From Rebecca billardiae RCC1528 (Eukaryota > Protista > Haptophyta): a stretch of 64,000 nucleotides of DNA. The translations under genes and the position numbers were made by a program. The notes beneath the pieces are model-generated. The model was not told the origin of the DNA, ran no database searches, and saw nothing but the letters and a program-made list of their open reading frames with translations. Shown here piece after piece: positions 53,231-64,000 of the stretch. Numbering within the stretch: the first letter of the stretch is position 1; each line of letters opens with the position of its first letter. The stretch covers positions 1,426,001-1,490,000 of the forward strand of contig OZ251224.1 of assembly GCA_965240325.2 (NCBI GenBank), read 5' to 3'.

Positions 53231-54640
53231 TCATTCAGTCTTCACGCAGCCGGCGTGCCCCTCGAGCGCGCGCACGCACTCTGACTCGGCGGTGTCCCAC
53301 GCCCACAGCCGCACGACCGCGTCGCTGTCGTCGCCCGCGCTCGCCGCGACGCGCCCGTCGGCCGAGAGTGCGACCGCCTCCACCCAGCCGGCGTGCGCTA
53401 GCAGCACAGCCTCGCACGGCCCGCGCGCGGCGAGCAGGGGCGCTCGCGCGCAGTGCTCGCGCCCGCGCGCCCAGCTGGCGCGGGCGGCCGGGTGCGCGGC
53501 GCGCGGCGCGCGCCGCGCCCACGCGGACTCGTGCGGCGCCGAGCCAACCGGCTGCTCGAGGCACAGCGCGAGGCAGCGGCCCGGCGCCGTGGCGGCGGCG
53601 GAGGCGCTCAGCCGCGCAAGCTGCAGCCAGTCCGCGACGCGCGCGCGCAGCGCCGCAGCCTCCGCGCGCGCGGCCGCGCCCGGCTCGCCGCCGCCGCCGC
53701 CGCGCGCGTCGGCGTCGGCGAGCGCCGCGGCCGTGTCCGCGAGGTCGCGCACGTACTCGGTCTCGAGGCCGTGCCGCGCGCGCGCCTCCCACCCGTCCGC
53801 GCCCGCGTCGGTGAGCTCGCGCGCCGCGTCGGCCGCGCGCCCGGCCGCGAGCAGCGCTTGCACTAGCTCCTCGCACCGGCGCACATTGAGCACGGCGGCG
53901 TCGCGGCCGGCGAAGGCCGAGGCGCGCGGCAGAGAGGAGCAGGGGCTGCGGCGCGACGCGCCGCCGCCCGTCCTCGCCGCCGGTGGCCTTCGGGTGGCGC
54001 AGCGGTTTGGCGGCCTCGCCCGCCCACGTGCCAGCCCAGAAATCCGCGAGCGCGTGCGCGTCGGCCGCGCGGGCGTATCGTGCCGCCGCCGCCTCGGCCA
54101 CCTGATGACGGTGGTACCAGCGCAAAGGGCCGTCGCCGCCGGCGAGCAGCGAGCCGAGCGCGTCGCGCACGGCGAGCCACACGGGCAGCCGCACCACCGC
54201 CGGCACCCAGAACTCGAACACGGACGCCAGCACGTCCTCGTGCAGAGAGAGCGAGCCTCCTCCAGCTCGGCACTCGAGAGGCCGCGGCGCGACGCGCAGA
54301 TGGCGCCGCAAGCGCGCCGCACGAGCATCGCGCCGTGCAGCCGCTCGACGCGCTCGAAGGTGGCGGCGACGGCGGCGCGCGCGTCGGCGGGCAGGTGCGC
54401 GGGCGGCGGCTCGCCCGAGCGCCACTCCGCCGCCGCGTCGGCGAGCAGCACGGCGTGCAGCGCGCTCGGCGCCTCTCCGAGTGCCGAGCGCACCGCCTCG
54501 GCCTGCCGCGCGTCGAGCGTGCGCCCCGCCGCGCCGAGCCGGCCTCGCACCACCGCCTCCGCGTCCGCCGCCGAGAGCCCGCCGAGCTGCAGCGCGGGCA
54601 CGCCCAGCTGCGCGAGCCGCGTCGCGCACCCGTAACGGTA
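53231..54640 (-). pseudogene. Truncated, frameshifted NACHT-WD40 (NWD1/TEP1-like) gene fragment
   Basis: FERVERLHG...ICASRRGLSSAELEE shifts frame near 54255 into LSLHEDVLASVFEFWVPAVVRLP...LRWYHR...AAAARY and shifts back near 53935. One WD40 repeat (HAGWVEAVALSADGRVAASAGDD...VRLW) precedes the stop. Confidence 0.75.
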
Positions 54641-55010
54641 GCCGCCAGCGTCACCGCCAGTGTCACCGCCAGCGTCAGCTCCCGAGTCGATCTGCGCCAA
54701 AAAGGACAGAGTCAAGAAGCGTGTCGAGCGGCGCGGTGGAGACTCACCGTGGAGAGCAGCGCAGAGTAGCGCACGCGCTCGCCGCGCAAGCACCTGGGTA
54801 TTTTTCGACCACTTTTGTCCCTAAGTGCGGCAGCTCAAAAAATGGCGTTTCGCTTCAAAGAATAATCAAAGATCCCGCGCAATGACATCTCGCGTGTATG
54901 AATCAAGGGTAATCAAGGGGCTTAAACCCGCCACTGAGAAGCTGACGGTTCATGACTTCATATGCCGGCATAATACTTTAATTCAAGCGACATAAAAGCC
55001 GACCCAACTT

Positions 55011-55493
55011 AATGGATTGCCACCCGCATTGACGTCGTATCAGTAGATGACCAAAGTATATCAGCAAGTGTAGCTTGATAACCGTATGATACAAGGGCGC
55101 GCGGGAACGTCGATTCAAGCTACCCGCGCAATACCATATCGCGTCGCTTTGATGAATCTCAGGAGTGAACAGCTATCCAGAGAATTAGTTCGATATCTCA
55201 CCTTTTTATGGTCAGTTCAACACACGAATCTTGACTATCAGAAAGGTATCAGAGATGACTTCGTCCTATTTGATTCCGATTTCTTCTATTACTTACTATC
55301 CAAGGATTAAGGAGCAGTACAAACGCAATCATGAGCAGCGATATCGAGTCAAATGCGGATTTCACACCTAAATCCACCTACAAAAATCCCCCAAATCCTG
55401 CGCGCATCCTCTTTTTTTTTGATTTTGCGGAGCACGTGCGCCGCCCCCCCCGGCTTTCGCTCACGCTCAGACCTTTCGGGGGGGCCGTGCGCC
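55011..55493 (-). repeat. Right ~480-bp terminal inverted repeat (partner 7303-7795)
   Basis: Reverse complement of 7303-7795; ends GGGGGGCCGTGCGCC and is followed by ATTATTAT. Confidence 0.93.
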
Positions 55494-55697
55494 ATTATTA
55501 TGTTATTATTATATTATTATTATATATAATTGCAGCCGAGTGGAGTCCAGTCCGCGACCAGTCGGACCAGTGGCGGACGCCGACTGTGAACATGCAGTGT
55601 GACAGCTTTATAAGATGATCGGGCGCCCCTCGTCACAGGCTTTCTCATTCAAGGACTCAGTCCGACGGGCAGCAGGCTGCTCACTCAATGATCAGGC

Positions 55698-56924
55698 TCA
55701 GCTCAGCACACTTGCCGAGCGGTCGTGCAGATTTACGATCGCCTTCACGAGGGATGTTGCGCGCACCGTGCAATTTGTGGTCGCGTCCAGCACCGCGTCA
55801 AGCTGCCCAAGCTGCCCGTCGAGAAGCTGCCCGATACCGCGGTGCACACCTTTGAGCTCGTGCAGCAGCGCGCTGATGTGCTCATGGACAGCTTCTGGTG
55901 AATGTGTCGCCGGGCCTGCGCGGTCGGCGGCCGCAGCGGTGTCAGGGAGCTCGTGTGGCATCACCGGCGGCAAAAGATCGACCGGCGGTCCAGCTGCCCG
56001 CTTGCCCTGCGGCCTCAGGAAGTCGATGGCGAGGAGCTGATCGGACATCGACTCGACGTACTCATGGAATTCGACCAGCTGCCGGTTCTGCAGGATCGTG
56101 CGGTAGTCGGCGCACAGCTGCTCGTGCACAATGTACGCCATGTCTGCAGCGTTGGCGAGCTGCTGCGCCACTTGGCCCTGCACCGTCGAGTCGAGCCACA
56201 CGTCCGCGGAGCGAGCGACCGGGTCGGTGAGGGCTGCCTCGCGCTGCTCTGTATGCTGCGCGTCGAGCAGCCGCCCATCCGCAGAGACGCGCTCCCGCTG
56301 CTCGCGCACCTTGCGCACGGCCTCGTCAATGGTGCGGAGCGATCGGCGCTCGATCGCGCGTGCAGTGAGAGCGCCGGTCACGCCAACGACGCTGCTGCCG
56401 ACGGCCACGCCGCCGGCGAGCCACGCGCCGATGCCACCGACGGCGATACCAACCGGACCACCGACCAGTAGCCCGATCCCCGCACCGGCCGCGGCGCCCG
56501 TCCATCCCGCCTTCCACGCCCACGCCTTGACGCGCCGACGCTGGGCATCTGCGAGGCACTCGTGCCCGCGCTCAAAGGCATCGGCTGTCTGCTCGTTCTT
56601 GCGTGCGGCGTACTGCAACTTCTCGGCATCAGATTCGACGATCTGCACCAACATCTCGGAGAGCGCCGAGATTTCGGCGGCCCCTTGTGCACATCGGCGC
56701 CACTCTTGCTGCTCCTCCGCCTCCGTGCGCAATCGGTCGCGCTCCTCGTGCACCTGGGTCGTCTCGAGTAGCATCCAGGCGGCCGGCGCGTCGGCCACGG
56801 GGGAAGCCGGCTCATTCGAGACCGCCGCTCCGGCCGAGCGCAAAGGCACCCGCACTGGTTGCCTGTACCGCTTCATCCAGGTGTCGACGGCGGAGGAGCC
56901 GTTGATCTCGTTGAGCGCCGCCAT
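55698..56924 (-). CDS. SNARE-motif protein with syntaxin-17-like Gly-rich hairpin TM and additional C-terminal SNARE-like helices
   Basis: EISALSEMLVQIVESDAEKLQ...FERGHECLADA, then GAAAGAGIGLLVGGPVGIAVG, then ISALLHELKGVHRGIGQLLDGQLGQLDAV. Confidence 0.6.
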   Translation of the reverse strand: MAALNEINGSSAVDTWMKRYRQPVRVPLRSAGAAVSNEPASPVADAPAAWMLLETTQVHEERDRLRTEAEEQQEWRRCAQGAAEISALSEMLVQIVESDAEKLQYAARKNEQTADAFERGHECLADAQRRRVKAWAWKAGWTGAAAGAGIGLLVGGPVGIAVGGIGAWLAGGVAVGSSVVGVTGALTARAIERRSLRTIDEAVRKVREQRERVSADGRLLDAQHTEQREAALTDPVARSADVWLDSTVQGQVAQQLANAADMAYIVHEQLCADYRTILQNRQLVEFHEYVESMSDQLLAIDFLRPQGKRAAGPPVDLLPPVMPHELPDTAAAADRAGPATHSPEAVHEHISALLHELKGVHRGIGQLLDGQLGQLDAVLDATTNCTVRATSLVKAIVNLHDRSASVLS

Positions 56925-57038
56925 CTCGCCCCTTGAACCGGCTGTCTTGCCCACCGCCACCGGATTGAGAAGGGCAAGAAGGCACCGGACTCATCATCAT
57001 CGGCACGGACAGCATGGCGCGTTGGCGCCAGGCACGAC

Positions 57039-57904
57039 ATGTTTGACGATCGCGACGAGGACCGACCGCGACCGGTGCTGCCGGTCGAGGCTGCGGCGCG
57101 GCGCCCGCCCTCTGCGCCGGGGCAGCCACCTGTCGACGGTGTGGAGTACCTGCTCAACGTCAGGTCTGCGCGCGCCCGCGTCGTCTGCTGTTGGCTGCAC
57201 GCCCGCTCTCGGCGTTCACGCGTCACCAGTGCGCGCGCACCCGTGTGCACAGGCAGGAGGCGGAGGCGTTGCCGGAGGTGATGACGCGGCAGCTCCCTGC
57301 TGCTGCGGCCAGACGCTCGGTACTTCAGACACTTCGCACGCAGCCCGAGGTGGAGGAGTGCCTCGCGCCGCCGCCCGGCTTGGCGCCAGACTCTGAGTGG
57401 CAGACAGACTTCCTCTGCCAGTTTGCCGACGTGCGCCAGTCCCTGCGCAGGTGGAGCGCCCGCGGCCCGCCGCAGGTGCACCCACGCAAGCTGCCGGCTC
57501 GGACAGACGTGCAGGCGTGGCGCCGGATCTGCGGCTGGGAGCCTGAGCGTGATGGCGCGCGGCCGTCACTCCCGCAGCTGAGCGCGTGCACGGCGCTCGA
57601 GCAGGTGGACGTGCAGCACCTCGTGCAGCTGCACGCGCACTGGCTCGACGACGCGTGGGAGGAGGAGGGTGCGGAGGCGCTCACGGACCAGCGCGCTGCG
57701 TGGCTCTTTGCGCTGCTCGCACGGCTCGACGCGGACCTCCTCGCCGACACCGCCGCAAGCCTGCGGCACATCTTCCGAGTGCTCACGCGCGTTCGAGCGC
57801 GCCATTCTGCGAGCGAAGCGGCCAGCGCTCGAGTGGCCTCGGTCAATGTTCTCATCACGATCATCGCCCGCTACTTCAAGCAGGCAGGGCCTGGGGAAGG
57901 ATGA
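57039..57904 (+). CDS. GEMIN2: Gemin2/Brr1 (SMN complex subunit); exons 57039-57163 and 57253-57904
   Basis: PPVDGVEYLLNVR|QEAEALPEV, WQTDFLCQFADVR, WLFALLARL, NVLITIIARYFKQ; GT-AG intron gives 777 nt in frame. Confidence 0.88.
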
Positions 57905-58473
57905 GGCGTTCGCCTCCCCGGCGGCAACACCCTGTCTCGGCAGCAGCATCACGACGCGACTTTGATCGCGGCCGATGGCGATACGCATGCGAAGCCGCCA
58001 TGATCACCGCCGGTGAATCGGTGATCGGCGCGCTCCGCGCTGCCATCGTCAACAGCAACTCGTCACCGCCGCGCGACCGCCGCTAGTCTCAGCAGCAGCA
58101 TCAGAATCATGTATATATCGCGGTCATCGTCGCGTAGTACGCCGTCAGCATGAAACGTACATATATATATATATCAAATATATATATATATATATATATA
58201 TCTGATATCACATATGCGTCGCCGTACGACGCGTGTGTGTGTATTTCCGATGCAGCCGCCGAGGCTACATCATTCGTCGCCTCGCGGGCTCGCGGGCCAT
58301 CGGCATCGCGACGCGTCCGCGACGCGACGCGATTTCGACAGCATCGCCGTGGGCGTCTCGGGACGCAGGAGCGGGTTACGAGCCCGTGTGGTTCAGCGGC
58401 TAGCGGGGCCGGCTGCGAGCAATCGCCCGGTCCCGCCCTGACCCTCGACTGAGACAGCGGCCCCACGCCGCCG

Positions 58474-59453
58474 CTACGCGTCGAGCGCCAGGCGCATCGC
58501 GGCGTCGACATCGCCCGCGTCGTCACTGTCGAGCATATCGGCACCGCCGGCCTGCAGCGAGTCGCGCGCGCGCGCGCACGCAGAGGGCAGAGGTCCGGCG
58601 GTCGGCGCGCGCGCGCGGGAGGCTGCGCGCCGCCTGCGCTCGGCGCGGCCGCGCGTCGCACCTGCGCCTCCGCCTCGTCGAGCGCGAGCAGCACGTTGTC
58701 CATCGAGCGCTGCAGCGCCTCGTCCATCGACTGCCGCAGCTCCTCGTCCGCGCGCATGTCCATCTCGAGCTCGAGATCGAGCAGGTGGTCGTCCGCGCCC
58801 GCCGCGGCGCCGCTCAGTGCCGAGGCGATGTCGGGCGGTGGTCCGAGGCTCGCCGCGGCGCCGACGGCGGGCGCCGTGGGCAGCGCGCCGCCGCCCCACA
58901 GGCTGGCGCCCGCGCCCGCGCTCGACGAGCTCGGCACGCCCCTGCGCGGCGCCGGGCCGGAGCGGCGCGGCGCGGAGGGCGCGCGCGTCAGCCTCGCCGG
59001 GCGCGGCGGCGCGGGCGCGGCGGCGCGGCGGCGCGCGGCGCGCGGCGCGCGGCGCGCATCGCACGTGGACCAGAGGGAGGAGGAGCCCGCGCGCACGCTG
59101 CCGCCGAGGGGCGGCGCCGGCTGCAGCAGAGGGACGGCAGGGACAGCCGGCGTGGGCGCGAGGCCGGCGCCGAGCGCGCCTGCGCCGAGCATGGGCACGC
59201 CGCTCGCCGAGTGCGGAGGCAGCACGGCGCGCGCGGGCTGCGAGCTCGGCGTCCACTCGCGCGCGCGGGGGTCGAGAGATCCGGCCGCGGCCGCGTCGGG
59301 AGCGGGCGGCGCCTTTGGCGCGCCGCGTGACGGCGGCCCGGCCGCCGCCGCGGCGACGGGCGGCGGGGGCGGCGGGGGCTGCTGCTGCTGCGGCTGCTGC
59401 TGCTGCTGCGCTGAGCGCATGGGCGCCGCGCCTGCAGCGGCGCTCGTGCCGGC

Positions 59454-59492
<39 letters not shown>

Positions 59493-60149
59493 GCCGGGCG
59501 GCAGCGGCGGCCGCAGCATCGGCGCGCCCGCCGCCGCCGCCGCCGCCGTGCGCACGCGCGCCAGCCAGCTCTGCGTGAGCGCAGCCTCGTACGCCCGGCA
59601 GTTGGACACGTCGGACGCGCGCGCGGTCGCCGCGAGCGCCTGCGCTGCCTCCGCGCCCGCCAGCACCGAGCCCGGCGCGTCGGCGGCGGGGGCGCTCACG
59701 AGCAGCAGCCGCTGGGAGTTGATCGCTCGGCCAACGGCGGCGGCGACCGCTGGGCTCTCCCACCGGGCCAGGTACCACAGCCCCGCGACGGCGGGCGGGA
59801 GCCAGACGAGCTCGCGCACGCAGAGCGCGCCGCCGAGCGCGCCGAGCGCGCCGCCCGCCGCCTCGGCCGTCAGCGCGTCGAGGGCTCGCAGCACGGCCTC
59901 CGGCCGCGGCGCACTCGGAGCGTATAGCTCAAGCAGCAACGTGCGCGCCGCGGGCGTGTCGGCGGGCGCGGACACGAGCGGCGGGGCGAGCGCCTGCCTG
60001 TAGTCGGCGAAGCTCAGCCCGCCATCCGCTCCGAGTGGCAGGAGGCCGCGGCCCAGACTGTCGGCCAGCGGCAGCCTCGCCCACTCCGGCGTGCACAGCG
60101 CCCCGCCGCCGCCCTCGGCAAGCGCGGACGCGTCCGCGCGGAACACGCT

Positions 60150-60207
<58 letters not shown>

Positions 60208-63047
60208 AGCGCGGCGAGTGAGAGCGCGTGGGCGCTCTGCATCGGGCTCGGGCCCTCGGCGACAGAGCCGAGGGCAGGCTGCGGCGGCGGCGGCGGCGCG
60301 GCGGCCTGGCCCGCCGCCGCGCCGCCCTGCGCACTCGAAGGCTGCGCCGCGGGCTGCGCCGCGGGCGGCGGCTGCGGCGGCTTGTGAGCGCCCAGCGCCG
60401 CGCCGCCGCTGTTGCCCCAGGCGTTGGCGCCGCCGTGCGCCGGCGCCGGCGCCACCGGCTCTCGCGCGGGCATCGAGGCCGAGCGCAGGAGGGGCGCCGC
60501 GGGTGGCCCCTGCGCACCGGGTGCGCACGCGCCGCCGGGTGCGCCGCCGCGCGCGCCACCGAGGGCGCCGCACACAACCGCTGGGCCCCAGGCCCCGCCC
60601 GGCGGCGCGGCCGCGGATGCCAGCTCGGCCGAGATCGAATCTGCCGAGGGCGCGCGGCGCGCGCCCTGCGGCGGGCGCTGCTGCGCGGCGCGCGCGCCCT
60701 GCGGCTGCGCGTGCGCGGCGGCGGCTGCGCCGTTGCACGCATAGCCGCCGCCGCCGCCGCCGCCGCCCGCCGCAGCCCCGTTCGCGCCCGCGCCGCCGCC
60801 GGCCTGCGCGCGCGCCCTCGCGCCCGCGCCGCGCTCTGCGCCCGCCGCCGCGCCGCCGCCGCCGCCGCCCTTCGCCGAGCCGCCCTCGGCGCCCTTGGTC
60901 GGCGCGCGCCCGCCCGCCTGGCCGGCGAGCTCGCGCATCCAGCGCGAGTGCTCGGCCGCCTCCCGCCGCTCGCGTTCGCTCGCGCCGTCCGCGCCCGCGA
61001 GCACGTCAGCCGCCTGCGGCGGCGCGGAGGCGCGGCGCGCGGAGGCCGCGTGCGCGCCGCCGCCTCTCGCGCCGCGCGCGCCGCCGCCCGCGCCGTTCAC
61101 GCCGCCAGAGCCACTCGTCGCGGCGTGGTGCACCAGCGAGGACGCGGCAAGCTGCGCCTTGAGCCCCGGCGCCGCCAGCTTGAGCAAGTCGTCCATGCCG
61201 TCGGAGTCCGAGCACGAGGAGACGTCGTCGTCGTCCGACTCGGCGGACTGGCCGCCGCCGCGCCGCTCGTCCGTCGCGTTGGCGACGGCCGCCGCCGCGT
61301 CGGTGGCGGCGTCGGCGTCGGCGACATCGCCCGAGCTGCGGCCGGCGCGGCCGGCGGCGGCGGCCCCGCCGCCGCCGTTCCCTCCTCCGCCGCCGCCGCC
61401 GCTGCTGCTGCCACGCTGCTTGCTCAGCGTCGCCCCCGCCGCACCGGCGGGCCGGCGCGCGCTCGGCTCTGCGGCCGCGCCGCGCGATGCGGCCGCGGCG
61501 CGCCCCGCGCCGCGCGCCTCGGCGGCGGGCGCAGCCGCGCCCGCGGCGGCCGGGCCGTCTCGCTTCGCCTTGGCGCGCTTGCGTCGCGTGGTCGTGCTCG
61601 GCTTGCGCGGCGCGCCCGCCGGCTCGGCGCTCACCGTCGACACGACCGGCGCCGGCTCGGGCGCGACGGCCGGCGGCGACTCGGACTGGCGGCGCGGCGC
61701 CGCGCGCGCGGCCGCGGGCGCGGGCTGGCCGGCGCCGAGGGCGTCGACGGCGCTCGGCGCGGGCGCGGGCAGCGGCGCGGCGTGCGCGGCGGGCGCGCTG
61801 GGCGGCGGCGGCTGCGGCGCGGGCGCGGGCGCCGCGGCGGGCGCCACCGCGGCGCGCACGCGCCCGCTCAGCGCCACCCACTTCGCCTGCAGCTTGGCGA
61901 GCGCGGAGTCGTCGATGCCGCCGCGCGCCGCGCGCTGCTGCGCGAGCGAGCTCTCAAACGCGTCGAGCTGCGCGCCGAGCGTGGCGGCGGTGGGCGGGTG
62001 CGCGGCGTGTGCGGTGCGCAGCGCGGTGCGCGCCACGTCGCACGCGCTCGCGAGCCGCTGCACGCCGTGCGCCGTGCGCGCCTCCTGCGCGAGCGCGGCC
62101 GCCAGCACCACGTGCTTCCGCTGCTTGGAGATGGCGAGCGGGGACTTGCCCGTCGCGTCCTGCACGTCCGGCGAGGCGCGCGCGGCGAGCAGCGCGGCGA
62201 CGGAGCCCTCGCAGCCGACGAGGCACGCGGCGTGCAGCGCGGTGCGCCCTGTGCGACTCTCCTGCCAGTTCGGGTCGAGCCCCGTCGCGAGCAGCAGCCG
62301 CACCACGGAGGGCTGCCCGCCCGCCGCCGCCTTGAAGACGCGCTCGTGCACCGCCTCCGCGTCCGCTCGCGCGTCGTACGCGACGGAGTCGAGCTCGACG
62401 ACCACCTCGAGCGAGGGCGGGCGGGCGGAGTCGGCGCGCGCGCGCGCGCACGCGCGACCAAAGTCCGCGCCGAGCAGCGCCTCCGACTCCGCCGCCGCCG
62501 CCGCCGCCGCCGCCGCCTCGGCCGCAGGCGCGAGGCTCGTCGGCGGCGGCGGCGCGGCCGCGAGCTCGGCGCGCGCGGCCGCCGCGCCCGCGACTCCGCC
62601 CGCCGACTGCGCGGCCGCGGCCGCGGCCGCGCCGCCGTCCGCGCCGTCCGCCGCCGCGCCGCCGGGCACGGGTTCCGGCACCGCCGCCGCCGGCCGCGCG
62701 GGCGTGACGAGCGCGATCGGCCCCGCGCGCGCCGCGGCCGCGAGCTCGCGCACGCGCGCCGCGCCCGCCGCGCTCACCGCCGCGACCAGCGTGTCACCGT
62801 CCTGCACCCCGAGGTCGAGGGGGCAGTGTGAGGCGCGGATGCGCTCGCCGCGGCGGTACAGGTGGACGCGGCCGCCGCAGGAGGTGGGCGGGAGCCGCTT
62901 CGCGAGGGAGGAGCACAGCGTGCCGAAGCGCGTCGTCTGCAGCATCTTGAAGTGGAACTCGGCGGGCGCGGCCGCGCCCGGCGGCAGCGCGCCCGCCCCC
63001 GCGCCGGCCGCGGGCGCGCCCGCGGGCGCGCCCGCCGCCGCGCAGCT

Positions 63048-63078
<31 letters not shown>

Positions 63079-64000
63079 GGCGGCGAGGGCGCCGCCTCGG
63101 GCGGGTCGGCGGGGGCGGCGTCGGCCGCCGCCGCGCCCCGCGCCGCCGCCGGCTGCGCGGGCGCGTCGGCGGGCGGCTGCGCGAGCGCGGCCGCGGCCGC
63201 GGGCGCATCCGCCGACGGCGCGCCCGCCGCGCCCGCCGGCGGCGCGGGCGCATCGACAACTGTGACTCGCACTGAGAGCACGGCGGCGGTGCCCTTGACA
63301 AAGGCGAGGCCGAGGCGCGTGCGCGCGGCGCCGAGCGCGTCGAGGTCGCCCGGCCCGCATTCCGCCAGCCACGTCGTCACCGGGTCCGCCGCCTCCTCCG
63401 CCGCCGCGGCCAGCGCGCTCGCGGGCGCGTCCGCGCCCGGCGCGCTGCCGTCTGCGCTGACGTCCGCGCCGCCGCCCGCGCCGCCCGCGCCGCCCGCGCC
63501 GCCCGCGGCGCGGCACGCCGGGCAGGTCCAGTCCCACAGCGCGCCGAGCGCGACGGCCTCGGCGCCCGGCTGCGCCGCGAGCGCGTCCGCGCGCGCGAGC
63601 GAGCTCGCGGGCACCAGCCTCGCCAGCTCCGCCGCGGGCATGCACGCCGCGTGGAAGTGGACGTGGCAGCGGCGCGCGGCGCAGCGGATCATCATGTGGG
63701 GGTGGCCGTCCGAGCCGGGCGAGGCGCCGGCGGAGGCGCACGCCGCCGCGGCGCCGCCGAGCGCGCGCGGCGGCACGGCGTCGCGCGCGGACGCGGGCGG
63801 CGCCGTCGAGTCGCCGCACAGCGCGCACAGCACCAGCTGCTCCCGGCGCAGCACCTGCCGCCAGCCCCAAGACTCGCCCGGGTTGAACAGGTGGTCGGTC
63901 GAGAGTCGCACGAGCTGCTGCGCCGCGCCGCCGTGCGCGCGCACGCTCGCGCCCACGCGCAGGCGCACGCCCGCGGCGGCGGTGCCGGCGAGCATCTTGA
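58474..64000 (-). CDS. Large multidomain protein, 5'-truncated by the window: MATH C-terminus with inserted PHD, SUMO-like domain, ankyrin repeats, PAM2-like and UIM-like motifs; introns 59064-58942 and 58661-58552
   Basis: HLFNPGESWGW; CALC...MIRC...CHVHFHAAC...WTCPAC; FHFKMLQTTRF...GERI...LGVQDGDTL; TGRTALHAAC...DATGKSPL; SLDPRAREWTP; spliced last exon ends DVDAAMRLALDA. Confidence 0.82.
60150..60206. repeat. (CCG)n trinucleotide repeat encoding poly-Gly
   Basis: About 19 CCG units within the minus-strand CDS. Confidence 0.9.

Follow-up and report, generated by a model that had tools for sequence, protein, structure and literature searches.

An open reading frame of the haptophyte Rebecca billardiae joins a syntaxin-17-type Qa helix and hairpin to a SNAP-25-type Qc helix, a candidate single-chain t-SNARE

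Results

A single-exon gene for a conserved Pavlovales protein

The window analysed here, the whole 64,000-nucleotide stretch at positions 1,426,001 to 1,490,000 of contig OZ251224.1 of Rebecca billardiae RCC1528, has a GC content of 61-84% in 2-kb bins and carries on its minus strand an uninterrupted open reading frame (ORF), 55698..56960, the only long ORF at this place in the ORF list that has homologues. Translation from the ATG at 56924 gave a coding sequence (CDS) of 408 codons plus stop at 55698-56924. An earlier note on this DNA had read the product as a syntaxin-17-like Qa helix and membrane hairpin followed by Qb-like and Qc-like helices, and all of the peptides that it quoted lie in this ORF (Gly-zipper, residues 148-164; 'Qb-like', 256-277; 'Qc-like', 350-378). 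The profile comparisons reported below show, at the level of homology, that a Qa helix and hairpin of the syntaxin-17 type and a Qc helix of the SNAP-25 type are encoded in one ORF, and that the protein is a membrane protein descended from a syntaxin-17-type Qa-SNARE. That it functions as a single-chain t-SNARE is what we infer with evenly balanced confidence. The features of the gene are as follows.

55698..56924, minus strand: complete single-exon CDS, 408 amino acids plus stop (stop codon 55698-55700; translation and Pavlovales homologues)
56703..56924, minus strand: N-terminal region, residues 1-74, short and poorly conserved (predicted local distance difference test, pLDDT, <50 at 1-9 and 22-47; no Pfam Syntaxin or STX17_N)
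56544..56702, minus strand: helix 1, assigned as a Qa-type SNARE motif, residues 75-127, layers -7 to +8 (hhalign, PDB profiles, alignment to 7bv6_B)
56628-56630, minus strand: zero-layer residue D99 of helix 1 (alignment to syntaxin-17)
56505..56543, minus strand: basic/aromatic juxtamembrane stretch, residues 128-140 (sequence; constant spacing to the hairpin)
56361..56504, minus strand: Gly-zipper hydrophobic hairpin, residues 141-188, two Gly/Ala-rich segments around GGP (sequence; phmmer)
56229..56360, minus strand: helix 2, Arg-rich 'return' helix, residues 189-232 (AlphaFold2 helix 179-232, pLDDT 74-90; Pavlovales conservation)
56022..56183, minus strand: helix 3, putative 'Qb' position, residues 248-301 (AlphaFold2 helix 248-299, pLDDT 81-85; near-invariant)
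56106-56108 and 56088-56090, minus strand: D273 and Q279, candidate central residues of helix 3 (conservation, register scan)
55887..56021, minus strand: Pro/Ala-rich disordered linker, residues 302-346, 45 amino acids (pLDDT mostly <50 at 303-340)
55728..55886, minus strand: helix 4, assigned as a SNAP-25/29-type Qc SNARE motif, residues 347-399, layers -7 to +8 (hhalign, PDB profiles)
55812-55814, minus strand: zero-layer residue Q371 of helix 4 (layer table)

In length, helix 2 roughly equals the C-terminal half of helix 1 together with the juxtamembrane stretch, and the 45-residue linker is poorly conserved in sequence and conserved in length.

A word-indexed search of 5.8 billion proteins returned six full-length or nearly full-length relatives with 53-57% BLASTP identity, and exhaustive phmmer added a further homologue with 46% identity (P0008); overall identity to the Pavlovales full-length homologues ranges from 45 to 61%. 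The same search with an alignment as the query returned nothing beyond the sequences already found. The architecture is kept in related algae, with full-length homologues among the NCBI gene models of Diacronema lutheri (KFE25_008999, 387 amino acids) and Pavlovales sp. CCMP2436 (385 amino acids). In the Pavlovales alignment, helices 3 and 4 are almost invariant and helix 2 is highly conserved, while the N-terminus and one linker vary freely. Judged from these alignments, the gene is real and strongly constrained. An assembly or annotation artefact as the origin of the fusion was rejected because the ORF is continuous and full-length counterparts occur in two other Pavlovales genomes and in assembled public sequencing runs.

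Helix 1 and the hairpin belong to a syntaxin-17-type Qa-SNARE lineage

Exhaustive phmmer also detected 16 distant proteins (E values 1e-9 to 1e-3), all of which align to residues 58-212, that is, to helix 1 and the hairpin. In several distant relatives a Pfam SNARE domain lies directly before the protein's own Gly-zipper hairpin, with 27.6 bits, above the gathering threshold, in P0016 and weaker scores in P0012, P0015, P0020, P0023 and P0024; Pfam C19orf12 and Gly-zipper similarity in the relatives is weak. The relative from Chromera velia carries the UniProt name t-SNARE coiled-coil homology protein, and other hairpin relatives come from Tetrahymena, a diplonemid and a choanoflagellate.

Helix 1 was cut out alone before comparison, to exclude bias from the Gly-zipper. 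The Pavlovales profile of this helix matched the profile of the distant relatives over 71 columns (hhalign 96.7%, P 4.3e-10), and the combined profile matched syntaxin-17 among PDB sequences at 9e-13 (7bv6_B) and 3e-11 (4wy4_B), together with syntaxin 13, syntaxin 7 and syntaxin 1A, these four at 1e-13 to 1e-10, Qa chains ranking ahead of any non-Qa SNARE. Overall, the helix-1 family profile matched STX17 and other syntaxins at 1e-13 to 1e-8, with STX17 as the best natural one; the top PDB match was a designed single-chain t-SNARE (sc-t-SNARE), which was reached via its syntaxin-derived part. The alignment of Pavlovales sequences alone to syntaxin-17 (7bv6_B) is gapless over 62 residues and sets W75 on a Trp close to the beginning of the SNARE motif in human syntaxin-17 and D99 on the zero-layer Gln. 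In each of the 10 family members examined, 29-30 residues lie between the +8 layer and the hairpin GxP. Taken as a statement of homology, helix 1 and the Gly-zipper hairpin are of the syntaxin-17-type Qa-SNARE lineage, which bears out the syntaxin-like helix and syntaxin-17-like hairpin that the earlier note had proposed.

Around these two elements the chain is organised differently from syntaxin-17. Pfam found no N-terminal Habc or STX17_N domain, just 74 mostly disordered residues preceding the motif. Residues 141-188 contain no Lys or Arg, hence none between the hairpin segments. After the hairpin come about 220 conserved residues with three long helices instead of a short variable tail.

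Helix 4 is assigned as a SNAP-25/29-type Qc motif

A profile of the relatives' C-terminal helices, containing no Pavlovales sequence, matched the C-terminal motifs of SNAP-25 (1e-8) and SNAP-29 (2.7e-5) in the PDB, followed by syntaxin 8 (2.7e-4) and syntaxin 6 (3.6e-3), with Qc chains only at the top of the list. The Pavlovales helix-4 profile in turn matched this profile over 57 ungapped columns (hhalign 91.9%, P 7e-7) and set Q371 on the zero-layer Gln, and a mixed helix-4 profile matched syntaxin 8 at 8.6e-5, its top matches again being Qc. In a 3 x 3 hhalign control matrix, the Qa profile was the sole match of helix 1 and the Qc profile the sole match of helix 4; all cross-type controls and controls with reversed Pavlovales alignments gave P >= 0.036.

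The layers of helix 4 are I350, L354, L357, H361, I364, L368, Q371, L375, V378, T382, C385, A389, L392, I396 and L399, of which Q371 and L375 are nearly invariant family-wide. Nine residues separate the +8 layer from the stop, and in 10/10 members the chain ends -2 to 9 residues from this layer, as in SNAP-25. The C-terminal helix is thus assigned by profile homology as a SNAP-25/29-type Qc SNARE motif, in agreement with the Qc-like helix of the earlier note.

These results bear on the explanation that the protein has no relation to SNAREs, being a Gly-zipper hairpin protein of a C19orf12-like kind with generic coiled coils whose resemblance to SNAREs is due to chance or composition. The sole Pfam match on the protein is indeed C19orf12 (E 1.4), the phmmer matches are possibly inflated by Gly-zipper bias, and the structural neighbours are generic helical bundles. 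With the hairpin excluded, however, helix 1 still scores as Qa (P 4e-10) and helix 4 as Qc (P 7e-7) while the controls are flat, and the PDB matches are type-specific, to Qa chains for helix 1 and to Qc chains for helix 4. We regard this explanation as very improbable and largely refuted.

The layout recurs in divergent protist groups

In five long proteins among the distant relatives the chain goes on beyond the hairpin (P0010, P0014, P0015, P0017 and P0022), and all of these but the truncated P0017 end in a C-terminal helix with an E-[LI]-D-x-Q-type centre. P0022, used as the query in the word-indexed search, yielded three more relatives (P0027, P0028 and P0029). The relatives in these long non-Pavlovales groups come from metagenomes, assembled sequencing runs (Logan) and, for one group, MMETSP transcripts, and the alignments are shallow (4-18 sequences). 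Locus scans of JGI metagenome contigs and IMG/VR found no relatives. From sequence alone, the layout of Qa helix, hairpin, a further region (X) and Qc helix recurs in three very divergent groups, namely Pavlovales and at least two other protist groups. The putative centres of the three helices are D/D/Q in Pavlovales, Q/D/Q in the P0014/P0015/P0017 group, Q/Q/Q in the P0022 group and S/D/Q in P0010. Neighbours in a protein-language-model space included SNARE, STX17_N, SNAP-25, STX6 and V-SNARE_C clusters with scores of 0.79-0.89, which serve as leads only.

Several side observations were made on this family. In the helix-1 alignment of the hairpin SNAREs, the zero layer is occupied by Q in most members, by D in all Pavlovales and P0012, by S in P0010 and by A in P0011, P0024 and P0025, so that the ionic Gln has been lost several times within the lineage. 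P0011, P0012, P0013 and P0021 (148-184 amino acids) are minimal proteins that consist of a SNARE helix and a Gly-zipper hairpin alone. Clusters of about 146 amino acids, mostly labelled Nucleocytoviricota, were among the nearest protein-language-model neighbours of the window protein; an IMG/VR scan found no viral relatives of P0012. In P0022, P0027, P0028, P0029 and P0010, a Trp-rich domain of about 130-150 amino acids with the invariant pattern W...W...GW...W.Y...RRR.W lies between the hairpin and the middle SNARE-like helix, and its only family hint comes from P0033, a longer isoform, in which Pex24p (dysferlin-motif peroxin) is matched very weakly (E 0.13). The P0022 group also has an N-terminal region of 140-175 amino acids that is not in Pavlovales; P0022 itself is encoded at locus L003:3001-4860.

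Observations weighing against a complete set of Q-helices

A number of observations, gathered in this section, count against the reading of the chain as a single-chain t-SNARE. Pfam gave no SNARE, Syntaxin or STX17_N match for the whole protein, for seven aligned members or for the three isolated helices, and a direct sequence and alignment search of solved-structure sequences with the whole protein gave no significant match. With the helix-1 profile of Pavlovales alone, syntaxin-17 ranked second among 177,635 sequences at a non-significant E of 0.42, and the helix-4 profile of Pavlovales alone had no match in the PDB. Because neither is significant, the assignments of helices 1 and 4 are transitive, made by way of the distant relatives. 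The zero layer of helix 1 is D99, not Q, with D invariant in all Pavlovales aligned there (the position is Q in most distant relatives), and layers +2 to +4 of this helix are polar (A106, N110, T113).

Helix 3, which the earlier note had taken as Qb-like, was not recognised by any of the tests used. Residues 236-306 gave no SNARE motif with Pfam or with mixed or Pavlovales-only PDB profiles, and hhalign comparisons of helix 3 with the Qa and Qc profiles, with the P0022-group middle helix and over full C-terminal halves stayed at the level of the reversed controls. The zero layers of D that had been proposed for the first two helices stand for helix 1, with D99 on the Gln of syntaxin-17; in helix 3, D273 is central, and the SNARE layers around it are putative. 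D273 is the conserved central residue in an h-x-x-D-x-x-x-h pattern common to P0010 and P0014. In an ungapped profile scan, the best placement of Pavlovales helix 3 put D273 opposite D350 in P0010 (z 5.05, with the runner-up offset far below) and opposite D243 in P0014 (z 3.4, first among about 200 offsets); in P0015, P0017 and the P0022 group, other offsets scored better than the D273 register. The heptad seam of the helix is ambiguous: N-terminal to D273 the apolar residues L256, A259, A263, V266 and L270 fit a zero layer at D273, while C-terminal to it L283, F286, V290, M293, L297 and I300 better fit a zero layer at Q279, layers +2 to +4 being polar in the D273 register.

The chain could accordingly be read as a two-motif fusion of Qa and Qc, with helix 3 as a spacer or regulatory element and a separate Qb-SNARE (Vti1, Sec20 or membrin type) joining an R-SNARE to complete the bundle. 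Helices 1 and 4 alone pass the homology tests and helix 3 fails all of them, and helix 3 is predicted to pack with helices 1 and 2 near the membrane, out of register with the helix-1 layers. However, helix 3 lies exactly at the place of a SNAP-25-type Qb motif and is followed by a SNAP-25-like linker: the order of helix 3 (52 residues), a 45-residue disordered linker and the Qc motif is the layout of SNAP-25, and this linker measures 36-65 residues in 10/10 family members examined. A SNARE motif is moreover recognisable at this place in the sister group, since the middle helix of the P0022 group (P0022, P0027, P0028 and P0029) has a Q-G-E-Q-I centre and matches 5buz_C at 6.7e-5, the best match being a Qa chain, not a Qb chain. 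Given also the h-x-x-D-x-x-x-h centre shared by P0010 and P0014, a protein with Qa and Qc motifs only is distinctly unlikely. The Qb status of helix 3 itself is putative and follows from its position, the 45-residue SNAP-25-like linker and the middle SNARE motif detectable in the sister group. As for the three Q-helices that the earlier note had suggested for one polypeptide, the Qa and Qc helices were found in one ORF, and the helix between them was not recognised as Qb.

A full AlphaFold2 model was built from a 14-sequence alignment (mean pLDDT 68.6; predicted template modelling score, pTM, 0.54), with helices at residues 49-154, 179-232, 248-299 and 343-407 and low confidence at the Gly-rich residues 154-180 and in the linker (about 303-340). 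Helix orientation was read from the kind of structural neighbour, not measured on coordinates. Over model residues of about 98-303 the neighbours are three-helix up-down-up bundles such as BAR domains (Z 9-10), and over residues 45-252 they are chemoreceptor hairpins; from these neighbours, helix 2 is read as running back along helix 1 and helix 3 as running forward again, parallel to helix 1. In a model of the fragment 236-408, both helices have pLDDT 86-92, and the structures most like it are coiled-coil hairpins of antiparallel helices (dynein stalk, IpaB, FliJ, prefoldin; Z 10-11, root-mean-square deviation 2-3 Å). The models therefore predict helix 1 (98-154), helix 2 and helix 3 in an up-down-up arrangement and helices 3 and 4 as an antiparallel hairpin. 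Taken at face value, the monomer would be an antiparallel four-helix bundle instead of a parallel Q-bundle. A superposition of 144 residues within 47-303 on two parallel helices of the SNAP-25 chain in a 20S complex (9ojz_I, Z 7.7, 3.5 Å) agrees with the parallel course read for helices 1 and 3, at a score within the noise range for helical proteins. Shape searches with Foldseek against the PDB, VIA-align and ESM-Atlas returned generic helical bundles only (BAR domains, chemoreceptors, dynein stalk).

Such models would fit a SNARE-derived scaffold that does not fuse membranes, in which the hairpin anchors a permanent antiparallel four-helix docking bundle in the cytosol and the SNARE motifs are relics. 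Consistent with this are the antiparallel AlphaFold2 arrangement with the neighbour scores just given, the D in place of Q at the helix-1 zero layer with polar core positions after it, and helix 3 without a SNARE signal. Nearly every residue of helices 3 and 4 is invariant, not the core alone, which suggests several binding surfaces. On the other hand, Q371 and the heptad core do not vary even between very divergent groups, the canonical Q is kept in all three helices of relatives, and the linker of 36-65 residues and the end of the chain at the C-terminal motif are features characteristic of SNAP-25 for which an antiparallel hairpin has no need. Off-pathway arrangements are also known for isolated SNARE motifs, and AlphaFold2 on a monomer is unable to show a hetero-complex. 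Non-fusion scaffold roles are documented for syntaxin-17: the mammalian and nematode proteins act as docking platforms in mitochondrial fission and in the growth of lipid droplets (PMC11864666). We consider a scaffold of this kind rather unlikely; the predicted antiparallel monomer also fits a closed resting state of a single-chain t-SNARE.

Neighbouring DNA

The divergent neighbour at 57039-57904 (plus strand) is a gene for Gemin2/SIP1 (SMN-interacting protein 1; Pfam SIP1 1.7e-37), unrelated to the fusion protein and apparently split over two frames, with a probable intron near 57165-57250. Beyond it, 58107-63995 (minus strand) is occupied by an Ala/Gly/Pro-rich low-complexity ORF of 1962 codons with ankyrin repeats, at the end of which a TA-rich microsatellite (about 58150-58230) reads as I-Y-I-Y repeats. 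On the other side of the gene lies an NWD1-like ORF with winged-helix and WD40 domains (53231-54793, minus strand). Just past the stop codon, at 55400-55540, the GC-rich surroundings are interrupted by a T/C homopolymer patch and about 45 bp of pure A/T ATT/ATA repeats (about 55487-55530), which may be signals of the 3′ untranslated region or terminator region.

Discussion

SNARE fusion machines are described as bundles of three or four separate proteins, and SNAP-29 is the partner of syntaxin-17. We tentatively propose that the protein described here is a natural single-chain t-SNARE that needs one R-SNARE, rests in a self-closed antiparallel state and replaces the pair of syntaxin-17 and SNAP-29 in several protist lineages, a reading that we hold possible and somewhat doubtful as a whole. 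In such a protein, the hairpin would anchor the chain and return it to the cytosol, helix 2 (the 44 residues past the hairpin) would lead the chain away from the membrane, and helix 3 and, after the long linker, helix 4 would run towards the membrane alongside helix 1; the linker is long enough to allow helix 4 to lie parallel to helix 3. Given this chain topology and the long linker, one polypeptide could supply the Q-helices of a target-SNARE. A single R-SNARE of the Ykt6, VAMP7 or Sec22 type on the other membrane would then complete the four-helix bundle and drive fusion. The antiparallel monomer bundle would correspond to the closed resting state, with helices 2-4 folded on helix 1 standing in for the missing Habc domain, and the ionic layer in Pavlovales would consist of D99, D273 (or Q279) and Q371 instead of Q/Q/Q. 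By analogy, likely sites of action are autophagosome-lysosome/vacuole fusion or contacts between the endoplasmic reticulum (ER) and organelles, the link to autophagosome fusion being drawn from the analogy with syntaxin-17 and SNAP-29.

If this proposal is correct, evolution has reached a single-chain t-SNARE of the kind that designers reported only in 2026, and the result would be a minimal two-component fusion system in which stoichiometry, acceptor assembly and the need for SM/Habc control are fixed by the construction of the chain. It would also open a way to study the organisation of syntaxin-17 and SNAP-29 functions in haptophytes and other little-studied protists, and the D/D/Q ionic layer would test the weight of the 3Q:1R rule. 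Should it turn out to be a closed scaffold, the protein would document the recycling of SNARE motifs for non-fusion roles.

To our knowledge, no natural SNAREs with several motifs are known apart from the SNAP-25-type Qbc proteins. The natural multi-motif SNAREs named in the literature consulted are likewise Qbc proteins (PMC9546365, PMC11344281). No description of a natural three-motif SNARE, of a natural fused protein of the Qa and Qbc type, or of syntaxin-17 in haptophytes, was found in the literature searched, the coverage of which was incomplete. The natural Qa-hairpin-X-Qc fusion is a new domain architecture within SNAREs, and it can be compared with four known systems.

Syntaxin-17 is an ancient, patchily distributed Qa-SNARE (PMC5399786) with a Qa motif, a 44-residue hydrophobic domain of two segments and a short variable C-terminal tail (PMC11864666). 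K254 between the hydrophobic segments of human syntaxin-17 is needed for autophagosome targeting, while nematode SYX-17 lacks this Lys (PMC11864666). The Pavlovales protein resembles syntaxin-17 in its Qa helix, the fixed spacing, the Gly-rich two-segment hairpin of about 45 residues and the Trp near the start of the motif. It differs in having D99 for Q, in lacking Habc/STX17_N and a Lys between the hydrophobic segments, and in that the C-terminal tail is exchanged for a conserved three-helix extension of about 220 residues ending in a Qc motif.

With the SNAP-25 family (SNAP-25, SNAP-23, SNAP-29, SNAP-47 and Sec9), the protein shares a C-terminal Qc motif with a zero-layer Q at the end of the chain, preceded by a long linker and a helix. 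In contrast to that family, it is fused to a Qa-SNARE and an anchor, its helix at the Qb position cannot be recognised as Qb in Pavlovales, and its linker has no palmitoylation Cys cluster.

Chlamydia IncA and Legionella SNARE-like effectors likewise combine a bilobed hydrophobic hairpin with cytosolic SNARE-like helices. IncA appeared as a structural neighbour with a Z of 7.3, within noise, and P0010 had a weak Pfam match to IncD. These effectors are, however, bacterial fusion inhibitors with SNARE-like helices after the hairpin only, and no sequence relationship between them and the protein was shown.

There is also a man-made precedent. The designed sc-t-SNARE-5.s.8 (PDB 9Y5F/9Y5G; bioRxiv 2026) is a single chain that fuses membranes together with one v-SNARE; it contains one antiparallel helix, and its ionic layer is dispensable for single-turnover fusion (PMC13174531). 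Both the designed and the natural protein carry three non-v-SNARE helices in one membrane-anchored chain, counting the putative Qb helix of the latter. In the design, SNAP-25-derived helices come first and are followed by syntaxin and a single-pass transmembrane domain, whereas the natural protein begins with the Qa helix, is anchored by a hairpin in mid-chain and carries the other helices after it.

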